This document shows, piece by piece, positions 21,801 through 64,000 of a stretch of DNA of 64,000 nt; the first letter of the stretch is position 1, and every line of letters begins with the position of its first letter. A model generated the notes under the pieces. It had not been told where the DNA came from and searched no databases. It was given only the letters and a program-made list of their open reading frames with translations. The position numbers and the translations under genes were made by a program. The stretch comes from Macrostomum lignano (lineage: Eukaryota): positions 744,001 to 808,000 of the forward strand of contig NIVC01000051.1 of assembly GCA_002269645.1 (NCBI GenBank), in the 5' to 3' direction.

Positions 21801-24800
21801 TAAGTCTGTCAACAGTTCAATCGTGAATAAGACTTTTCGCGGCAAAATGAGGATCTATAGTCACAAGGTAAGGCAATTTCCCTAATATTAATACTAATTA
21901 GATGACGAGGCATTTGTCCATTGAACTAAATTGATAGTTACTCGTACCGTTTATTTTTTTTTATCAACAGGTGATCCCAGTCGAGCTCACAGAGGAGCAG
22001 CGACTGCTTCTCGCTCACACGGACGAATACACGGAGAAAGTTGAGGAGTCGCATTTCTTGTTTTTAACCTGCGACCTGCCTCCGCCTCCGCTGTATCCGG
22101 ACGAGATGAAAGAGAAGCTCATTCCGCAGGTGAGAATAGTTTGGGTTTTCAGTTATTGTAATATATCGTATTGATTTTCGTATTTACTGGATAGCCTGCT
22201 AGTAGTACTGTTGGAGTGTCATGTGCTTCAGGGTGCTCAGGGGGAATATTCAGGGTGCTCAGGGGGAATATTCAGAGTGCTCAGGGGAATATTCAGGGTG
22301 CTCAGGGGAATATTCAATGTTTTTAGGGGCGAATATTCAGGGTGCTCAGGGGGAATATTCAGGGTTTTTAGGGGCGAATATTCAGGGTTTTTAGGGGCGA
22401 ATATTCAGGGTGCTCAGGGGGAATATTCAGGGTGCTCAGGGGGAATATTCAGGGTGCTCAGGGGGAATATTCAGGGTGCTCAGGGGGATATTTAGGGTGC
22501 TCAGGGGTATTCAGAGTGCTCAGGGGTATTCAGGGTGCTCAGGGGTAGTATTCAGGATATTCAAGATAAATATGGGCAAAACTGATATTTATATGACTCA
22601 GGGCACATAATTTAGTACTGTATACTTTAGCTCTGAGGCTAGTGACTGACATTTAATTATTTTACCCACAGGTGCCACTGTCCAGCATATTGTCCAAGTT
22701 TAACGGCGTCGCCAAAAAAGAGTACAAGACGCACAAAGACTCCACTATGAAGCGGTTCCAGCTGATCAAGCTGCCCCAGTACATTCTGCTCTATGTCAAA
22801 CGCTTCGTCAAGAATCTATTCACTCGGGAGAAAAATCCCACTATTGTAAATTTTCCCGTTCGCGGAGTTGATTTTGGCGACTTGTTGGACCGTGGACCAG
22901 GGCTAAACACCAGTTCACCACCTACAACTTGGTTGCCAACGTGGTGCATGACGGTGAGTTCCTTAGCATATTCTCAGTCCCTCAGTCTTGTCACTCTGTG
23001 TCTCATTTTCCTGTGTCTGTTCTTGTCACTCTGTGTCTCATTTTCCTGTGTCTGTTCTTGTCACTCTGTGTCTCATTTTCCTGTGCCTGTTCTTCAAGGT
23101 GAAGAACAGACACAGAGTCTGTTCCCTGAGTCTCTGTGTCTCATTTTCCTGTGTCTGTTCTTGTCACTCTGTCTCATTTTCCTGTATCTGTTCTTGTCAC
23201 TCTGTGTCTCATTTTCCCGCGTCTGTTCTTGTCACTCTGTCTCATTTTCCTGTATCTGTTCTTGTCACTCTGTCTCATTTTCCCGCGTCTGTTCTTGTCA
23301 CTCTGTCTCATTTTCCTGTGTCTGTTCTTGTCACTCTGTCTTATTTTCCCGCGTCTGTTCTTGTCACTCTGTGTCTCATTTTCCTGTGTCTGTTCTTGTC
23401 GCTCTGTGTCTCATTTTCCTGTGTCTGTTCTTGTCTCTTTTTCCTGTATCTGTTCTTGTCACTCTGTCTCATTTTCCTGTGTCTGTTCTTGTCACTCTGT
23501 CTCTTTTTCCTGTATCTGTTCTTGTCACTCTGTCTCTTTTTCCTGTATCTGTTCTTGTCACTCTGTCTCTTTTTCCTGTATCTGTTCTTGTCACTCTGTC
23601 TCATTTTCCCGCGTCTGTTCTTGTCACTCTGTGCCTCATTTTCCTGTGTCTGTTCTTGTCACTCTGTGCCTCATTTTCCTGTGTCTGTTCTTGTCACTCT
23701 GTGTCTCATTTTCCTGTGTCTGTTCTTGTCGCTCTGTGTCTCATTTTCCTGTGTCTGTTCTTGTCGCTCTGTGTCTCATTTTCCTGTGTCTGTTCTTGTC
23801 GCTCTGTGTCTCATTTTCCTGTGTCTGTTCTTGTCACTCTGTCTCATTTTCCTGTGTCTGTTCTTGTCACTCTGTGCCTCATTTTCCTGTGTCTGTTCTT
23901 GTCACTCTGTGTCTCATTTTCCCGCGTCTGTTCTTGTCACTCTGTGTCTCATTTTCCCGCGTCTGTTCTTGTCACTCTGTCTCTTTTTCCTGTATCTGTT
24001 CTTGTCACTCTGTCTCATTTTCCCGCGTCTGTTCTTGTCACTCTGTGTCTCATTTTCCCGCGTCTGTTCTTGTCACTCTGTGCCTCATTTTCCTGTGTCT
24101 GTTCTTGTCACTCTGTGTCTCATTTTCCTGTGTCTTTTCTTGTCACTCTGTGTCTCATTTTCCTGTGTCTGTTCTTGTCACTCTTTGTCTCACTCGCTGA
24201 CTATTCTTGTCATTGTGTCTCAGTCGCTAACTATTCTTGTCACTATGTGTCTCACTGGCTTACTAGCCTTATCACTCTTTGTCTCACTCGCTGACTATTC
24301 TTGTCACTGTGTCTCAATCGCTAACTATTCTTGTCACTCTGTGTCTCACTCGCTGACAATTCTTGTCACTCTGTGTCTCACTCGCTGACTATTCTTGTCA
24401 CTCTGCGTCTCACTCGCTGACTATTCTTGTCACTCTGTGTCTCACTCGCTGACTATACTTGTCACTCTGTGTCTCACTCGCTGACTATTCTTGTCACTCC
24501 GTTCCCTTCTCTTATCGCATCTCAAGTTCAAGACTTTCCATCGCCTTTGGCGCCGCATGCTCCCCATGATACCCACCCCAAATCCAATCGCCAGGCACCC
24601 CTGTGAGCGGCACCTACAGGGTGCACCTGCAGCACTCCAGTACGGAGAAATGGTTCGAGTTGCAGGATTTGCACGTTGACGAAATTCTGCCGCAGATGAT
24701 ACCGTTGAGCGAGACCCTTGTCCAGGTCTGGCAGGTGGACACCTCCGTGCCTAATCCCAACTACGGCAAGCCGCCGCCAATGCCTGAGGAGCCAACTGCG

Positions 24801-33485: not shown

Positions 33486-44351
<10,866 letters not shown>

Positions 44352-45816: not shown

Positions 45817-50024
<4,208 letters not shown>

Positions 50025-54095: not shown

Positions 54096-54854
54096 ACAGG
54101 ATTAAAAGCGAAATGACACGAGATTAACTGCATTTATAAACTGTTATAAAAGTTATCGAGTAAATAAACGCGCACACGGTCACACGGTGCGCACTCGTAA
54201 CTTAAATAATATATTATATTATAAATCATAAACCACAATGAATTATTATCGTTGATACAAGTAATAAAAAACGATGCATACTGACGTGGTGTCTGGAAAT
54301 AGAAAGTTAGTTCTTTTTTATTACTAAAATTACGATAGATAGTATTTACTGTAGATAGGTAGTTAATTTATTAATTTAAGAAAGATTATTATTAAACACT
54401 ATCGCACTAAGCGAAAATTGCTTGGCCATCAGATAAGGAAAGGAGTTTATGGTAATTTCAAATAAAATATGACATTGGAATTTCAATTACAGCACTACAA
54501 TGAATTGTACTTTAAGCAGACGCAATAAATATTGTTTCGACATAAACTCCTTATTTAATAAACATTTCTTGTGAGCTTAGCACAACAATTAAAAGATACT
54601 TTTGGACAGAAAGAATGGCAACGCGTCTCTTAGAATTGGAGCAGCAATAGAGAGCTTATTATAGATAATTTATCTAAATCACAAACACTTATGGAAGAGA
54701 AGAAAAAACAGTAATTCTTCTGTTAAGGTCAGAGCAGAATTTATTAGACAAATGAAATGAATATTAACAAGTTCCGTGTTTCGTGTTTGTACACAAATAC
54801 TTAATGAAAAGAACTAAATTTAAATAGCAAAACGATTTTAACTACCGCAAAACA

Positions 54855-56275
54855 GAAGAGAAGAGAGAGAAGAGAGGAGAGGAGAAAGGAGATGAAAGGT
54901 GAGAAGAGGAGAGACGAGACGAGAGGAGAGGCGATGGGGAGAGGAGGGGAGAGGAGAGGAGAGGAGAGGAGAGAGCAGAGGAGAAGGAGAGAGAGAGAGG
55001 AGAAGGAGAGAGAGAGAGGAGAAGGAGAGAGAGAGGAGAAGGAGAGAGAGAGGAGAAGGAGAGAGAGAGAGGAGAAGGAGAGAGAGAGAAGGAGAGAGAG
55101 AGGAGAGGGAGAGAGAGAGGAGAGAGAGGAAGGGAGAGAGGAGAAGGAGAGGAGAGGGAGAGAGAGGAGAGAGAGAGAGGAGAGGGGGAGAGAGGAGAGG
55201 GAGAGAGAGAGGAGAGGAGAGGGAGAGAGAGGAGAGAGAGAGAGAGGAGAGGGAGAGAGGAGAAGGAGAGGAGAGGGAGAGAGAGAGGAGAGAGAGGAGA
55301 GGGAGAGAGAGAGGAGAGAGAGGAGAGGGAGAGAGGAGAAGGAGAGGAGAGGGAGAGAGAGGAGAGAGAGAGAGAGAGGAGAGGGGGAGAGAGGAGAGGG
55401 AGAGAGAGAGGAGAAGGAGAGAGAGAGGAGAGGGAGAGAGAGAGGAGAGAGAGAGGAGAAGGAGAGAGAGAGGAGAGGAGAGAGAGAGAGAGAGAGAGGA
55501 GAGGGAGAGAGGAGAAGGAGAGGAGAGGGAGAGAGAGGAGAGAGAGAGAGAGGAGAGGGAGAGAGGAGAAGGAGAGGAGAGGGAGAGAGAGAGGAGAGAG
55601 AGAGAGGAGAGGGAGAGAGAGGAGAGGGAGAGAGAGAGGAGAAGGAGAGGAGAGGGAGAGAGAGGAGAGGGAGAGAGAGAGGAGAGGAGAGGGAGAGAGA
55701 GGAGAGAGAGAGAGAGGAGAGAGAGAGAGGAGAGGAGAGGGAGAGAGAGGAGAGAGAGAGAGAGGAGAAGGAGAGAGAGGAGAAGGATAGGAGAGGGAGA
55801 GAGAGAGGAGAGAGAGAGAGGAGAGGAGAGGGAGAGAGAGGAGAGAGAGAGAGGAGAGAGAGAGAGAGGAGAGGAGAGGGAGAGAGAGGAGAGAGAGAGA
55901 GAGGAGAAGGAGAGAGAGGAGAAGGAGAGGAGAGGGAGAGAGAGAGGAGAGAGAGAGGAGAGGAGAGGGAGAGAGAGAGGAGAGAGAGAGAGAGAGAGGA
56001 GAGAGAGGAGAAGGAGAGAGAGGAGAAGGAGAGAGAGGAGAGAGAGAGGAGAAGGAGAGAGAGAGGAGAAGGAGAGAGAGGAGAGGAGAGAGAGGAGAGG
56101 GAGAGAGAGGAGAAGGAGAGAGAGGAGAAGGAGAGAGAGGAGAAGGAGAGAGAGGAGAGAGAGAGGAGAAGGAGAGAGAGAGGAGAAGGAGAGAGAGGAG
56201 AGGGGGGAGAGAGGAGAGGGAGAGAGAGGAGAAGGAGAGAGAGAGCAAAGAGAAGAGGAGAGAAATAAGGATAGA
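54855..56275. repeat. 1.4-kb polypurine (GA-rich) array
   Basis: Almost entirely G/A on the + strand. Confidence 0.97.
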
Positions 56276-56511
56276 TGACGGGGGTGGCAGTAAGAGGCCT
56301 AGAGACAGACACACGAGCTGAACAAGTTAGAGCAGAGAGACAGACAAAGATACGCAGACACAGGGGAGTGCACACTGCTAATTAGCTGAAAGCAGACACA
56401 CACACAAATTGATAACAAGTGAGACAACAATACCGAATAAACACAAAGACTAATAAAAATAAATAGTGAGTAGAGAGGAAAAGTCAAAGAACCAGCTCGG
56501 TTTCCCATAGA

Positions 56512-59500
56512 CTAGCTATTGGCGAACTGCTGAAAGAAGGCCTTCTTAAGCTGCCAGACGCAGTGGCAGAGCTCGGCAGAGGCTGACAGAGACAAGCCCA
56601 GCCCGCTAACAACAGTGGGCAGAGTCAGCAACAGGAAGGCCTGTCCATCGACCTTCTCAGACACGAGCAGCTCGCAGACATCGTCAGATATGTCCGTATT
56701 GGATTTCAAATAGATTAACAATTCGTCAATTGACCAATGCAACGGATTAGAAATCAATGGAGGAGCTAATTTAGCTTTCTTACTACTAGTAGTAGTAGCA
56801 GATGCGGCCGCTCCAGCCGAGGCAGAAGCCTGCTGCTGCTGCTGCTGCTGCTGATCATCGTTATGATTATTATTGCGCCGCTTTTTGCGCTTCTCTAGCA
56901 GGGCGTAGCTGGGCAGACGGACGCCGCGAGTTTGCACCCGAGCGGCGCCGCCATTAGCTGAGGAATGGTTGCTAGCCAGATCGTCGTCAACATCCGCGCC
57001 ACCTTGATAGCTGTCGTCTCCGCCTGCCTGATGCTGCGGTTGCTGCTCCAGCTGAGGCAGATTGCTAGCCGAAGCATTCGGTCTGAGCAGCCTAGGCGGT
57101 CGAGTCTTCCTTGGCAACCGTTCGACTGTGAGCAGTTTCTTTAATCTGGCCTGGCAGGTCTCCGGGCAGGAGGTGCGCAAACGGAATACGCTAACAAAAT
57201 AGGGACAGGCCTTCAGTCTGATGCAGAACTGCTTCAAATATTCGTCTAGAAACATGCTGTTATTGCACAGCTGCACTATTGACGAATAAGATTTGCCTTT
57301 GAACTTCGCTTTCATCGGGCGTTGAGCCAGAGAATCGCGCGGCTCTTCGGGATCACGCTCGATGTCTTTTAACACCTTGGTGGGGTTGTAGGCCGCTTGT
57401 ACTATTCGACTGATTAGGTCTTCGAGTAGGACGCACACGTCGCCTGGACCGAGGGACTTTGGTAGGCCGTCTACGGAGCCTTTGGACAGGCTGGGGCCCA
57501 CGTGGCAACGGCTGTTGACGTAGATTTTGCTGCACCAGCTTGGCGGATGCACGTTAGTTAGCAGGCGCTTGTGATGGGCCGCCTGCAATGGTGGCAGGGT
57601 AGTTGAGACTTTTTAAAAGGCTTAACTATAACATTTTTTCTACAGATTGCTACTGTTAGTAGGCGAGAAGCGTGTGTGTTAGAATAATAAGTAAAGCATG
57701 TTCACTGAAGGGTAAAATATATTGCATATGCGTCAATACATCGAATAGTAGTTATAAAAATAAGGTACTCTAAACTAGAGGTAAAATTATTAAATTAGTT
57801 ATAGTACGCCTATTAGCAGGCTTTACTGAGTAGGTCAACAAGTGGGTCAATAAGTAGGTCAATAAGTAGGTCAATTTGTAGGTAAATTAGTGGATCAATA
57901 AGTAGGTTAATTAGTGGGTCAAAGAGTGAACCTTGTGACTAAAGTGAAAACATAAAGCAATTAATTTGAGTAAGTATATATTAATATACCTGTTGATAGC
58001 AAAACGGCACAGACATTCGATGGCCATTCAGTTCGGCCCAGCCAACGTGGAACAGGCTGGTGGATCCCATGTCAACCAGAATTGGCGGAGACAGCGGCGG
58101 CAGATGATTGAGATGCAGCAGCATCAGCCGGCCAATAAACCTGGTGATGGTGGCCGGCACCAGAGTATTAGCTGGTTCCTCTTGGCTGACCATTTCCAAC
58201 TTTTCGCCCAGACAAAAGTCGAACTCTTCGTCTGGCAGCTGGAAATATGAGTCGGGCGGGGCCTGGGCGGCTTGACCGTCCGATGAGGCTGGGAGGCTGG
58301 CCAGGTAACCAGCCCAGGTGAAGTGGCCGCTGTGACCTGGGAATTGCGGTTAATGGGAGTACAGTGGTTTGTGATGGGCTGTTTTGTAGTTATGCTAGTC
58401 TAGTCTACACTGATAAACTAGCTGATAAACACCCCCCACAACTGACTAGCTGATAAACACCCCCACAACTGAATAGCTGATAAACACCCCCACAACTGAC
58501 TAGCTGATAAACACCCCCACAACTGACTAGCTGATAAACACCCCCACAACTGACTAGCTGATAAACACCCCACAACTGACTAGCTGATAAACACCCCCAC
58601 AACTGACTAGCTGATAAACACCCCCACAACTGACTAGCTGATAAACACCCCCACAACTGACTAGCTGATAAACACCCCCACAACTGACTAGCTGATAAAC
58701 ACCCCGCTGTACGACTGACAAGCTGATAAACAACCCAACCACTAACTAGCAGATCGACATTCCCATCACTGACTAGCTGATAAACACCCCGCAACTGACT
58801 CCGATAAACATTTCACAAACGACACCAATAAACACCCTACAACAAACACTAACAAACACCTCATAACCGACACAGATAACATTCTACAGCTGACACATTG
58901 ATAAATATCCCACAACCGACACTGGTAAACTCACCCGGCGGAGGAGTCAAGGGCAGCGACCTCGAGGCGCAAGTATTAGCGGCGAATATCTCGCAGGTCT
59001 CCGCAGTGCACAACCGTTTCACGCTCTGCCGTTCACTAGGCGGCCGTAAATCGTCCAATTCGACAATGAAAAAGTGCTTGTCAATCACTGACACGACAGA
59101 GGCGGGCTGGATAGTCCGCCTATGCACCGGATGCACAGCTTCCATTCGATGGCCCAAGCGGAATCTATGCTGCGGCGGGGCCCGATGCTTGCGCATAAAT
59201 TTACCGGCTAATGCTGGTTGCCATGACGACGATAGGCTGGTGGCCGACTCGTTGGACACCCGGCCCGACTCGGTCAGGCTGGGAGAATAATAGTAGGGAA
59301 GTGACGACTTCTGCTCGCCATCCGAGGCGCCAAACCCCAACGGATGCAGTCGGTGGCTGGTGAAGAACAGGTAGAACGGCTCTCTGTCGGGCCGGGGCTC
59401 CGAGCACTGCTCGTCCATCCACACGAGCTGGAGTCGGCCGCCGCGGTTGCTAACGACCTTTGGGTGGCGGGATGATGGCGTTCGAGGTGCTCGCACTGAG

Positions 59501-61057
59501 GAAACTGGAACTGCGCTATTAGATTAAGGAACCGATCTACCCGAAAGCCGAAACTGGAACCAATCTACCCGATACTGGAACCAACCTACCCGAAAGCCGA
59601 AACTGGAACCAATCTACCCGATACTTGAAACAATCTACCAGAAACTGGAACCAATCTACCCGATACTGGAACCAACCTACCCGAAAGCCGAAACTGGAAC
59701 CAATCTACCCGATACTGGAACCAATCTACCCGATACTTGAAACAATCTACCAGAAACTGGAACCAACCTACCCGAAAGCCGAAACTGGAACCAATCTACC
59801 CGATACTTGAAACAATCTACCAGAAACTGGAACCAATCCAACCGATACTGGAAACAATCTACCAGAAACTGGAAACAATCTACCAGAAACTGGAACCAAT
59901 CTACCCGAAAGCCGAAACTGGAACCAATCTACCCGATACTGGAACCAATCTACCCGATACTGGAACCAATCTACCCGATACTGGAACCAATCTACCCGAA
60001 ACTGGAACCAATCTACCTGATACTGGAACCAATCTACCAGTAACTGGAACCAATCTACCAGACACTGGAACCAATCTAACCGATACTGGAAACAATCTAC
60101 CTGATACTGGAACCAATCTACCCGATACTGGAAACAATCTACCTGATACTGGAACCAATCTACCCGATACTGGAACCAATCTACACGATACTGGAACCAA
60201 TCTAACCGATATTGGAAACAATCTACCCGATACTGGAAACAATCTACACGATACTGGAACCAATCTACCTGATACTGGAACCAATCTACCCGATACTGGA
60301 AACAATCTACACGATACTGGAACCAATCTACCCGATACTAGAAACAATCTACCAGAAACTGGAACCAATCTACCCGAAAGCCGAAACTGGAACCAATCTA
60401 CCCGATACTGGAACCAATCTGCATTCCATCTGCATCCCAGCTAACCTTAACAAACCACAGAGCGTATGGCATCAGACAGTTGCAGCACTCCAACAGGCCG
60501 CCCTCCAGAATCCTCTCAGCCGGTTGCAGGGCGTCACCATCAAGCATCTCAGTCGGAGCGTCCTCGCCTTCGCCTTCGCCTTTGCCTAGTAATAAACTTT
60601 TCAATACGGCATCGTCTGCAGTGTCTGAAGAGTCGCCGACTCGAACTTCGGGCGGCGGTTTTACTAGCGTGGGGTTCTGGCGGCACCAATCCAGCGATTT
60701 GCCAGTCTTGCTGGCCACGCTGTACCACACTGGCTGCTGATGCTGATGCTGCTCCTTAGCAACCGACGAAGCTGCGCCAACGAATTGAACGCCTAGCAAC
60801 GGTCCGCTAGCAGTTGCTATGCGAACTGGCCAATAAGTGTCGCGTTTCCATGGCAACGCGAACAGCATGCCAGGCCGGCAGAGGCTGGCGTGGGCAGCTT
60901 CTACGTGATGGAAAGTGTCGGAATCGGCCGCGATGGCGCCCGTATTCTGCAGGTAATCATCCCAGGTGAACGAGCGGCAGGGGTTCGAGTCATCCTCTGG
61001 TCCCGTTGACGCCGCTAGGGGCGTCTCAACCGGTTTGGCGGTTGCCGGCTCTGCGGT
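56512..61057 (-). CDS. SFMBT: SFMBT1/2-type Polycomb protein (4 MBT repeats, SLED, SAM); no ATG-containing first exon found
   Basis: Exons 61057-60446, 59457-58935, 58336-57990, 57582-56512 are phase compatible. MBT motifs [59 protein letters not shown]; [45 protein letters not shown]; [25 protein letters not shown]. Confidence 0.93.
58405..58860. repeat. 27-28-bp minisatellite CTGACTAGCTGATAAACACCCCCACAA (SFMBT intron)
   Basis: Tandem array. Confidence 0.93.
59528..60420. repeat. 21-bp minisatellite GGAACCAATCTACCCGATACT with higher-order variants (SFMBT intron)
   Basis: Tandem array filling the intron. Confidence 0.95.
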
Positions 61058-61244
61058 CTGCAGAGGGCGGAGGGTCGGAGGGTTGATGTAGTTAAAGAGG
61101 AAAAAGAATTAGAGCAGGAGTCGTGAGTTTGCAAGAAGTTCAGTAACAGGTTATGAAGTTGAGTGAACAGTTGGAGATAGAGATGGTAGACTTAAAGGAG
61201 CAGAATGAAAGTAGAGAGCTGAGAGGAGTCGAAAGAGTTAGAGT

Positions 61245-62025
61245 AGATGAGAGTAGAGAGTAGAGGAGAAAGACAGCAGAGTGTAGACTAGAGAGAGCAG
61301 AGTGTAGAATAGGGAGAGCAGAGTGTAGAATGGAGAGAGTAGAGTGTAGACTAGAGAAAGTAGAGTGTAGACTAGAGAGAGCAGAGTGTAGAATAGGGAG
61401 AGCAGAGTGTAGAATAGGGAGAGCAGAGTGTAGAATAGGGAGAGCAGAGTGTAGAATGGAGAGAGTAGAGTGTAGACTAGAGAGAGCAGAGTGTAGAATA
61501 GGGAGAGCAGAGTGTAGAATAGGGAGAGCAGAGTGTAGACTAGAGAGAGCAGAGTGTAGAATAGGGAGAGCAGAGTGTATAATAGGGAGAGCAGAGTGTA
61601 GAACAGGGAGAGCAGAGTGTAGAATAGGGAGAGTAGAGTGTAGACTAGAGAGAGCAGAGTGTAGAATAGGGAGAGCATAGTGTAGAATGGAGAGAGTAGA
61701 GAGTAGACTAGAGAGCAGAGTATAGACTAGAGAGAGCAGAGTGTAGAATAGGGAGAGCAAGAGTGTAGAATGGAGAGAGTAGAGTGTAGACTAGAGAGAG
61801 CAGAGTGTAGAATAGGGAGAGCAGAGTGTAGAATAGGGAGAGCAGAGTGTAGAATAGGGAGAGCAGAGTGTAGACTGGAGAGAGCAGAGCGTAGACTAGA
61901 GAGAGCAGAGCGTAGAATAGGGAGAGCATAGTATAGAATGGAGAGAGTAGAGTGTAGACTAGAGAGCAGAGTGTTGACTAGAAAGAGCAGAGTGTAGAAT
62001 AGGGAGGGAGAGAGTAGAGTGGATT
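61245..62025. repeat. 21-bp minisatellite AGAGTGTAGAATAGGGAGAGC between NUBP1 and SFMBT
   Basis: Tandem array. Confidence 0.95.
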
Positions 62026-62139
62026 AGAGAGAATAGGTTAGTGTCGAATATATTGCAGTAAACCTAATGCGGCAGCAAAATGACTATAACAAAGAAAAGA
62101 CGAAGCCTGGCAAAGAAATTAAAAAACCAAAAGATATTA

Positions 62140-62145
62140 TTTATT
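62140..62145 (-). terminator. Probable NUBP1 polyadenylation signal AATAAA followed by a U-rich tract
   Basis: Minus-strand AATAAA then TAATATCTTTTGGTTTTTTAATTTCTTTG; the only such hexamer I noticed between the NUBP1 stop and the SFMBT acceptor. Confidence 0.5.
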
Positions 62146-62524
62146 ATAAATCAATCAAGCCCGAAGATAACCGCTCTACTACAAACATTCTTCAGAGCAT
62201 TAGAATTTAGAAGTACAATCAACAGTTTTTGTACAAATTCAGAGCATTAATTGCAGATCTTAATGAATATTGGCCGAATAATTGGAGTAATATTATTGTA
62301 TTGCAGATGACGCATATGATTAACCAATAACTTTATCAGTTCGATGACACATGAAGACATGACACTTAAACGTAGTTAAGAAGATTAAGCATCATAATTG
62401 GTATTGAGAAATCATGAGCACAAATAAAACACAAACCAGAAGTCTGCTGTAGCGAGGGAGAAGGGCGAGTTACATTCCGTACAACAAGAGGCTGATAGAG
62501 GCGGAGCTTATGAAAAAATGAGCG

Positions 62525-63300
62525 GATAGAAGCGCAGATAAGAGTAGAGAAGGGAAGGATGGATAGCAGATAAGGAGGCGGATAAAGGCGGATAAGGGGC
62601 GGATGGAGGCCGATAAGGGGGCGGATGGAGGCGGATAAGGGACGGATAGAGGCCGATAAGGGGGCGGATGGAGGCGGATAAGGGACGGATAGAGGCCGAT
62701 AAGGGGGCGGATGGAGGCGGATAAGGGGGCGGATGGAGACGGATGGAGGCGGATAAGGGGGCGGATAGAGACGGATGGAGGCGGATAAGGGGGCGGATGG
62801 AGACGGATGGAGGCGGATAAGGGGGCGGATGGAGACGGATAAGGAACGGATGGAGGCCGATAAGAGGGCGGATGGAGGCAGATGGAGGCGGATAAGGGAC
62901 GGATAGGGGGGCGGATGGAGGCGGATGGAGGCGGATAAGGGGGCGGATGGAGACGGATGGAGGCGGATAAGGGGGCGGATGGAGACGGATGGAGGCGGAT
63001 AAGGGGGCGGATGGAGACGGATGGAGGCGGATGGAGGCGGATAAGGGGGCGGATGGAGACGGATGGAGGCGGATAAGGGGGCGGATGGAGATGGATAAGG
63101 AACGGATGGAGGCCGATAAGAGGGCGGATGGAGGCGGATAAGGAACGGATGGAGGCCGATAAGAGGGCGGATGGAGGCAGATGGAGGCGGATAAGGGACG
63201 GATAGGGGGGTGGATGGAGGCAGATAAGGGAAGGATGGAGGCGGAGAGGGGACGGATAAGGGGGCGGATGGAGGCGGATAAGGGGGCGGATGGAGACGGA
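62525..63300. repeat. G-rich minisatellite GGCGGATGGAGGCGGATAAGGG in the NUBP1 3' region
   Basis: Tandem array; explains ORF 62366-63313. Confidence 0.95.
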
Positions 63301-63373
63301 TGAATATAGTCATATCAGAGCAAACGTGGTCAGGCCAGAATGCAGCAGAGCATACAAATCCAGTGAAGCCTCA

Positions 63374-64000
63374 TCAAGGCAGAGCAGTCCTCAGCTGGTC
63401 AACCAAGAGCCGCATAGCAGTCATGGTCTCGCTACCGTCAGGCATGGTGTCAATCGGACATTGACCCTGATCCAGGGCCCGCGCCAGCCCCGGCTCAATA
63501 GGCACCCTGGCCAATAGCGGCAGTCCGAACTCTTTGCACATAGCCGCAGCTCCTCCGGTGGTGGCCGGAAAAATGTCCGACTTTCGTGTACAATTCGGAC
63601 ACACATAACCGGACATGTTTTCAACGACGCCTAGAACGGGCACGCCTAGCCGGCGGCAGAAATTCACCTCCTTGCGAGCGTCTAGAAGGGACACCTCCTG
63701 CGGCGTGGTGACAATAATTGCTCCGTCTACTCCGGCAGACTTGAGCAGCTGAACAATTGACAGGTGCTCATCGCTGGTGCCAGGTGGCGTGTCAATCAAC
63801 AGGTAGTCCAGCTGGCCCCAATCTACATCGCGTAGAAACTGTTTAATTAATCCGTTTTTACGGGGCCCGCGCCAAACCACCGCTTCGTCTGGCGAGGCCA
63901 ATAGAAAAGCGACGGACATGACGGCGAGGGACTCGTCGGCGTAGACGGGCGACCAGCCGTCGGCGCTCTGGTGGACAGTTTCGCCCAGCAGGCCCAGCAT
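63374..64000 (-). CDS. NUBP1: Cytosolic Fe-S cluster assembly factor NUBP1/Nbp35 (3' part; 5' end outside the window)
   Basis: [77 protein letters not shown]. [15 protein letters not shown] and FPxTTGGA match NUBP1 rather than NUBP2. Confidence 0.95.

Follow-up and report, generated by a model that had tools for sequence, protein, structure and literature searches.

A probable spliced-leader start codon for SFMBT downstream of NUBP1 in Macrostomum lignano

In the flatworm Macrostomum lignano, the gene for an SFMBT-type Polycomb reader probably obtains its start codon from the AUG that ends the spliced leader and probably lies in an operon downstream of NUBP1, the gene for a cytosolic Fe-S assembly factor. 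The probability of this explanation as a whole is put at about 0.75. The genes were analyzed in a 64,000-nt window of contig NIVC01000051.1 (assembly Mlig_3_7, GCA_002269645.1; contig positions ∼744001 to 808000), and coordinates are those of the window unless a locus is named. This origin confirmed the flatworm host that a preliminary description of the window, made from the DNA letters, had supposed. Window position 61057, where the SFMBT reading frame begins, is position 805,057 of the contig, and all SFMBT and NUBP1 features are on the minus strand (Table 1).

A protein cluster look-up placed both NUBP1 and SFMBT in three genomic copies in M. lignano, and these copies are recent duplicates. 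Copies were compared between the window, extended by the collinear stretch L004 of the same contig (L004 position = 71040 minus window position), and two further loci, L001 and L003; locus L002 is a NUBP1 transcript from a related worm. A search with the part of NUBP1 that lies at the window edge retrieved a 334-amino-acid (aa) protein encoded on NIVC01001433.1, a paralogous copy with exons near-identical to those of the window and minisatellites of different lengths. In all three copies the gene order, on one strand, was a bromodomain/KIAA2026-like gene, NUBP1, SFMBT, and a gene for a 342-aa product. Since the copies are recent duplicates, this common order counts as one observation and not as three.

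According to the proposed explanation, the SFMBT pre-mRNA would have no 5′ cis exon, and its first exon would begin at the 3′ splice site at 61057. The 35-nt spliced leader would be joined there in trans, giving a mature mRNA that reads ...UUGCAUG/ACC GCA GAG (the slash marks the junction), and translation from the leader AUG would yield M-TAEPATAK..., a protein of 851 residues with its first MBT repeat intact. The sequence upstream of 61057 would be an outron made up of a U-rich tract, a 785-nt minisatellite, and a pyrimidine tract, most likely continuing from the NUBP1 transcript. NUBP1 and SFMBT, perhaps together with the bromodomain/KIAA2026-like gene, would form one polycistronic unit that is resolved by NUBP1 3′-end formation and trans-splicing.

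Table 1. Features of the NUBP1-SFMBT region in window coordinates (TRF, Tandem Repeats Finder; UTR, untranslated region)
Feature	Coordinates	Strand	Description
NUBP1 last exon (cytosolic Fe-S assembly factor)	63374..64000	-	Cut by the window edge; stop TGA 63376-63374
Minisatellite A	62550..63301	-	C-rich, units of 22/32/43 nt (TRF); begins 72 nt after the NUBP1 stop; presumed NUBP1 3′ UTR
Unique AT-rich segment	62146..62549	-	From composition; presumed distal NUBP1 3′ UTR; 96-99% identity among the three copies
AATAAA	62140..62145	-	Sole AATAAA/ATTAAA between the NUBP1 stop and the SFMBT acceptor in the window copy
U-rich stretch downstream of the hexamer	62019..62139	-	43% T and 13% G over 62119-62019
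Minisatellite B	61234..62018	-	Pyrimidine-rich 21-nt unit, 37.5 copies, 785 nt (TRF); bulk of the spacer/outron
Outron 3′ end (putative)	61058..61233	-	Unique, 72% pyrimidine; acceptor CTGCAG 61063-61058; in-frame TAA 61111-61109
Tandem acceptor candidate	61050..61053	-	Second CAG 61053-61051, 7 nt inside exon 1 (ACCGCAG/AGCC); exon start 61050
SFMBT exon 1	60446..61057	-	Phase 0 at both ends, 204 codons; first codons ACC GCA GAG = T-A-E
SFMBT exon 2	58935..59457	-	End of MBT2, MBT3
SFMBT exon 3	57990..58336	-	MBT4
SFMBT exon 4	56512..57582	-	SLED domain, low-complexity linker, C-terminal SAM; stop TAG 56514-56512

Reading frame and start codon of SFMBT

The SFMBT gene model was built from open frames and GT/AG sites; its four exons gave 850 codons, matching in length and sequence the products that GenBank gives for the other two copies. 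Pfam analysis recognized MBT repeats in three stretches (9e−35) and a SLED domain (2e−23). MBT1 and MBT2 aligned to fish SFMBT1, MBT3 and MBT4 aligned to the Drosophila Sfmbt structures 4c5e and 3h6z, and the C terminus aligned with the SAM domain of fish SFMBT1, which was the best match outside Macrostomum, with 97% coverage. The earlier naming of the gene was thereby upheld, and the predicted product has the architecture of a single SFMBT-type Polycomb reader, with four MBT repeats, SLED, and a C-terminal SAM domain. No SFMBT transcripts of M. lignano or its relatives were retrieved from the Logan assemblies, and the sequences found were NCBI and UniRef entries only. A word-indexed homolog search with the 205-aa exon 1 peptide returned nothing, although the full-length query retrieved 850-aa proteins that bear this peptide at ∼99% identity; the empty result is a false negative of the word index and not evidence of absence.

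The frame starting at ACC (61057), directly after CTCTGCAG, was open through exon 1. Upstream of 61057 the nearest in-frame stop codon was the TAA at 61111-61109, and no ATG was found from there to 60868-60866, the first in-frame genomic ATG of SFMBT (codon 64, Met64; open reading frame [ORF] 60398..60868). In the BLASTP alignment Met64 paired with the Met of PGMKLEV in fish SFMBT1 (PGMLFAL on the worm side), which is the conserved Met of the “GMKLE” core motif at the start of the MBT1 barrel. The MBT1 arm begins 34 codons further upstream with FTWDDYL at 60970, pairing with FNWDDYLEETG (fish residues 19-29). From the arm through PGMLFAL, the worm sequence aligned to fish SFMBT1 residues 19-58, and 12 of 23 residues around FxWDDYL were identical between flatworm and fish. 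No genomic in-frame AUG therefore lies upstream of the conserved MBT1 sequence. A start at 60868 would delete the arm, and because conservation with vertebrate SFMBT1 extends to residues before the first genomic ATG, these residues must be translated. The preliminary description had proposed both that the frame is open from a phase 0 acceptor at 61057 and that the first in-frame ATG lies inside MBT1 and would cut the repeat, and the two proposals agreed with these findings. The distance from the initiator Met to the arm is 18 residues in fish SFMBT1 versus 30 for a leader-derived Met; the N termini of fish SFMBT1 and of a leader-initiated worm protein would be comparable.

M. lignano has a single 35-nt spliced leader, CGGTCTCTTACTGCGAAGACTCAATTTATTGCATG, with the 3′ end ...TTGCATG; ∼30% of its genes are trans-spliced, with an enriched trans-acceptor motif, [T/C]TNCAG (PMC8629364). 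The acceptor CTGCAG/ACC at 61057 fits this motif. Once the leader is placed before exon 1, ATG/ACC GCA GAG is in frame without a stop codon throughout exon 1 (204 codons) and over the whole 850-codon frame. As had been predicted in the preliminary description, a leader ending in ATG would supply an in-frame M-TAEPATAK. The leader holds no other AUG, its terminal AUG would be the first of the mRNA, and it offers the only AUG route to translation of the conserved MBT1 arm. For flatworms, initiation at the leader AUG is an established principle (PMC9851317 and PMC12582326, citing Cheng et al. 2006), and the final ATG of the Macrostomum leader has been regarded as a likely start codon (PMC10468722). 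It is quite probable that ribosomes use the leader AUG as the initiator of SFMBT.

The sequence before the acceptor was also examined for signs of cis-splicing. The dominant M. lignano donor is GT[AG]AG (PMC8629364), and no such donor was present between the NUBP1 stop codon and the SFMBT acceptor in any of the three genomic copies scanned. In the window copy, not even a GTA or GTG was found in the last 1.1 kb before the acceptor. An acceptor without an upstream donor is the classical requirement for trans-splicing. Comparison of the three copies gave seven differences (five substitutions and two indels of 2 and 8 nt, both frame-breaking) in the 190 nt that precede the acceptor, and the 189 nt from the acceptor to Met64 were invariant; divergence before 61057 and invariance after it fit an exon boundary at this position. 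The DNA was identical in the three copies from 19 nt upstream of the acceptor to 60811. Leader-like sequence was searched for and was not encoded in the window or the genomic loci, which rules out a genome-encoded leader upstream of SFMBT, and an Rfam scan of the window found no RNA family. Trans-splicing at 61057 is considered highly probable.

Public annotation was informative on the position of the boundary. SFMBT is already annotated as BOX15_Mlig010103g2 in the window, with the further copies Mlig021614g4 and Mlig025360g3, and GenBank simply marks it “partial” at the 5′ end in all three. The products PAA67991.1 (BOX15_Mlig021614g4) and PAA83740.1 (BOX15_Mlig025360g3) are 850 aa long and begin with TAEPATAK, and the coding sequence (CDS) of each starts exactly at the base equivalent to 61057, which is 14603 in L001 and 10001 in L003. 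In the M. lignano annotation, transcript 5′ ends were set by TBONE at peaks of leader-bearing reads and ORFs were called by TransDecoder (PMC5730564); reads of this kind are recognizable by the leader stretch ...CAATTTATTGCATG. For a trans-spliced mRNA that takes its start codon from the leader, this procedure would give a 5′-partial ORF running from the first base after the CAG. Models in UniProt start with QTAEP... or are truncated at MLFALPW (e.g., A0A1I8HY27), so other pipelines also arrived at no genomic start. The annotation is inconsistent among the copies, with identical DNA, in that the SFMBT model of the window begins at 61039 and those of the two paralogs begin at the acceptor.

NUBP1, the spacer, and the operon

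The annotated NUBP1 CDS covers L004 6212-7666, equivalent to window 64828-63374. The full protein matched PF10609 at 5e−88, shared 60 to 65% identity with NUBP1/Nbp35 of many eukaryotes, and carried at its N terminus CPGVSSESAGKAAPCAGCPNQGLC, the four-cysteine motif of the Mrp/NBP35 P-loop ATPase, so the identity first given to this gene could be retained. The NUBP1 transcript of the related worm (L002; SRR30276804, RNA-derived, 81% identical) starts with CTGCGAAGACTCAATTTATTGCATG, the 3′ part of the leader. Judged from this transcript, NUBP1 is itself trans-spliced. The NUBP1 CDS in L004 starts 2 nt after CCCGCAG, resembling the behavior of the SFMBT boundary. NUBP1 may itself lie downstream in a longer unit whose first gene is the bromodomain/KIAA2026-like gene.

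The 5′ UTR of NUBP1 after the leader junction was 26 nt in both M. lignano and the related worm. On this mRNA the leader AUG opens a short upstream ORF, with seven codons after the AUG in the relative and five in M. lignano (MRIVAQ, then a stop).

The preliminary description had listed a U-rich tract, one minisatellite, and a pyrimidine tract between a likely NUBP1 poly(A) signal and the acceptor, and all three were recovered (Table 1). It had also noted two ATGs in repeat variants within the spacer, and there were exactly two, at 61929 and 61678, with ORFs that stop at 61708 and 61238 as it had stated. The poly(A) signal fared less uniformly. The AATAAA is the only canonical hexamer in the window copy, whereas the equivalent of 62145-62140 is AATGAA in the other two copies, neither of which has a canonical AATAAA from the NUBP1 stop codon to the acceptor. 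AAUGAA is a common variant poly(A) signal in nematodes. The L002 transcript also enters a C-rich repeat, ∼110 nt after its stop codon. From the NUBP1 stop codon to the acceptor, the window measured 2,316 nt versus 3,100 and 2,951 nt in the other copies, in which minisatellite B was ∼0.6 to 0.8 kb longer.

Every SFMBT intron, the spacer, the NUBP1 3′ UTR, and one NUBP1 intron each contained a minisatellite with units of 12 to 43 nt (59548-60420, 58417-58800, 57829-57922, 61234-62018, and 62550-63301 in the window and 6600-6980 in L004). Array lengths differed by hundreds of bases among the three copies, and the exons were nearly identical. The arrays of the NUBP1 intron and 3′ UTR had a similar C-rich unit.

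Operons in M. lignano have been defined as adjacent same-strand genes in which the downstream gene is trans-spliced and the repeat-adjusted spacing is <1 kb (Ustyantsev and Berezikov 2021, PMC8629364), repeats being known to inflate operon spacers in this genome (PMC8629364). Gene tables for all three copies showed NUBP1 and SFMBT as neighbors with a common orientation and no intervening gene on the opposite strand. The distance from the AATAAA to the acceptor was 1,082 nt, or 297 nt after subtraction of the 785-nt tandem repeat. Measured from the NUBP1 stop codon, the repeat-adjusted distance was ∼780 nt (2,316 nt minus TRF arrays of 752 and 785 nt). With the same strand, adjacency, an adjusted distance below 1 kb, and probable trans-splicing of SFMBT, the pair would qualify under the published definition. 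The SFMBT locus tags end in g2, g3, and g4 under three different prefixes; by the tagging rule, genes cut from one transcription unit have a common prefix, which hints that SFMBT is never the first gene of its unit. The operon put forward in the preliminary description therefore stood as far as strand and spacing are concerned; that both genes share one polycistronic pre-mRNA is plausible, and cotranscription in a true operon is somewhat favored.

Alternative explanations

Several observations weigh against parts of the explanation given above. Leader addition at 61057 in the window copy is deduced from the annotation boundaries of two paralogous copies, and the window's own GenBank model of 844 aa (PAA92499.1; BOX15_Mlig010103g2) has its start 18 nt further downstream, at 61039, a site that lacks an AG. 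As the sequences there are identical in the three copies, this start looks like a difference in boundary assignment and not a biological one. The lack of donors is partly a by-product of G-poor repeats (6 to 8% G). All public SFMBT models are 5′ partial, leaving the 5′ end formally unannotated, and ten ATGs and several GTA/GTG trinucleotides occur in 62482-62179, so one might suppose that 61057 is joined by cis-splicing to a 5′ exon that carries a genomic ATG and lies in 62030-62520 or still further upstream. This is very improbable, because none of the three copies has a GT[AG]AG donor between NUBP1 and the acceptor, the RNA-seq-guided annotation includes no such exon in any copy and starts the CDS exactly at the acceptor in two, and the segment at 62146-62549 is more simply explained as NUBP1 3′ UTR. 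Other points concern the start codon itself. The leader AUG has U in position −3, which vertebrate rules would class as a weak context, and the tandem acceptor is a possible competitor, as a leader joined at 61050 would put its AUG out of frame, with 11 codons before a TAG. On NUBP1 nothing more than a short upstream ORF begins at the leader AUG, so ribosomes must often pass it, and UniProt A0A1I8HY27 was modeled from MLFALPW. The start might accordingly be at Met64 or a non-AUG codon, with the leader AUG skipped or used in a minor isoform, or, in a variant, splicing at 61050 might produce a short upstream ORF followed by reinitiation. Such a start appears improbable given that the 34 codons before Met64 hold an MBT1 arm conserved from flatworm to fish, that the invariance of these codons among the copies fits translated sequence and not UTR, and that the leader AUG would come first in the mRNA, in frame, with no intervening stop.

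The remaining alternative accepts the leader-derived start and differs in transcription: SFMBT would be monocistronic, with its own promoter in 62120-61058 or 62549-62146, the repeat-rich sequence would be no more than its outron, and NUBP1 would terminate independently. About 60% of trans-spliced M. lignano genes lie outside operons (PMC8629364), and the raw spacer (1.1 kb in the window and ∼1.7 to 1.9 kb in the other copies) greatly exceeds the mode of ∼100 nt. The shared gene order of recent duplicates adds no independent evidence for an operon, the NUBP1 3′ end is uncertain with a canonical AATAAA in the window copy only, and the locus-tag numbers may also count duplicated loci. On the other side, the adjusted 297 nt falls within the operon mode of the published bimodal distance distribution (PMC8629364), the tags g2, g3, and g4 suggest that SFMBT is never first in its unit, and, because tandem repeat and pyrimidine tract fill nearly all of the spacer, a promoter would have little unique sequence to occupy. 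A monocistronic SFMBT is thus judged unlikely, though by no means negligible, and the leader-derived start downstream of NUBP1 in an operon is preferred.

Precedents, implications, and neighboring features

No new mechanism is involved, as leader-supplied start codons and repeat-inflated operons have already been documented for flatworms and M. lignano, and both are common in the latter. The closest parallel to the proposed start is the class of leader-AUG-dependent mRNAs in Schistosoma mansoni (Cheng et al. 2006, J Biol Chem 281:733; cited in PMC9851317 and PMC12582326), in which, as the work is cited there, an AUG-ending leader is placed on a phase 0 exon and gives the sole in-frame start upstream of conserved protein sequence. 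Unlike that class as so described, the present case comes from a free-living macrostomid and concerns SFMBT, and its junction and translation start are deduced. Within the same species, trans-spliced genes and operons with the 35-nt leader and the acceptor motif have been cataloged (Wudarski et al. 2017, PMC5730564; PMC8629364), among them unit Mlig030697.1 with genes.g1 and.g2 (PMC5730564), and same-strand gene pairs with repeat-inflated spacers likewise occur there. Neither PMC5730564 nor PMC8629364 treats the NUBP1-SFMBT pair or any dependence of it on the leader AUG, and the SFMBT gene identifiers and the names NUBP1 and SFMBT were absent from the text supplements of PMC5816591 and PMC5730564. 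No statement was found in the literature that an intact MBT1 in SFMBT requires the leader AUG. The proposed NUBP1-SFMBT operon would resemble the SL2-type operons of Caenorhabditis elegans in coupling upstream 3′-end formation to downstream trans-splicing, with a U-rich element between. The two differ in that M. lignano has a single leader without SL1/SL2 specialization and the spacer here is 1.1 kb rather than ∼100 nt; the nematode leader also supplies no AUG.

In an animal amenable to transgenesis, SFMBT would offer a clear instance of a conserved chromatin regulator that needs the leader AUG for its first domain to be complete. It is conceivable, if improbable, that full-length SFMBT, the methyl-lysine reader of the PhoRC Polycomb complex, is made only after trans-splicing at one exact acceptor and that acceptor choice (61057 in frame, the tandem site 7 nt further on out of frame, or none) acts as a posttranscriptional on/off or isoform switch for a Polycomb component. 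In that event the leader machinery would be tied directly to chromatin regulation, which may be relevant in neoblasts, where 85% of specific genes are reportedly trans-spliced. For curation, PAA92499.1, PAA67991.1, PAA83740.1, and several UniProt models could be completed by the addition of a leader-derived Met. SFMBT also illustrates why gene finders that demand a genomic ATG mismodel flatworm genes.

A purine-rich (AG/GGAGA)n satellite of ∼1.5 kb (54800-56375; GC skew, 0.72) begins ∼140 nt downstream of the SFMBT stop codon, and a similar strongly skewed block was found at ∼27.7 to 30 kb. The next gene downstream of SFMBT (∼46900-50024, minus strand) encodes the 342-aa product from a genomic ATG (MTFPIHPNNY...). 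Pfam gave no match for this product, and exhaustive splice enumeration returned at least 119 equally valid models, so no unique exon structure could be reconstructed. Further along, exons resembling pyruvate carboxylase (CPSase_L_D2, HMGL-like, and PYC_OADA) were located at 36077-36685 and 40433-43697 on the minus strand, in a gene interrupted by (TCTGTCTG)n-type and “QHNVH” repeats. A ubiquitin-hydrolase (UCH) exon at 22672-22950 on the plus strand runs into a repeat.

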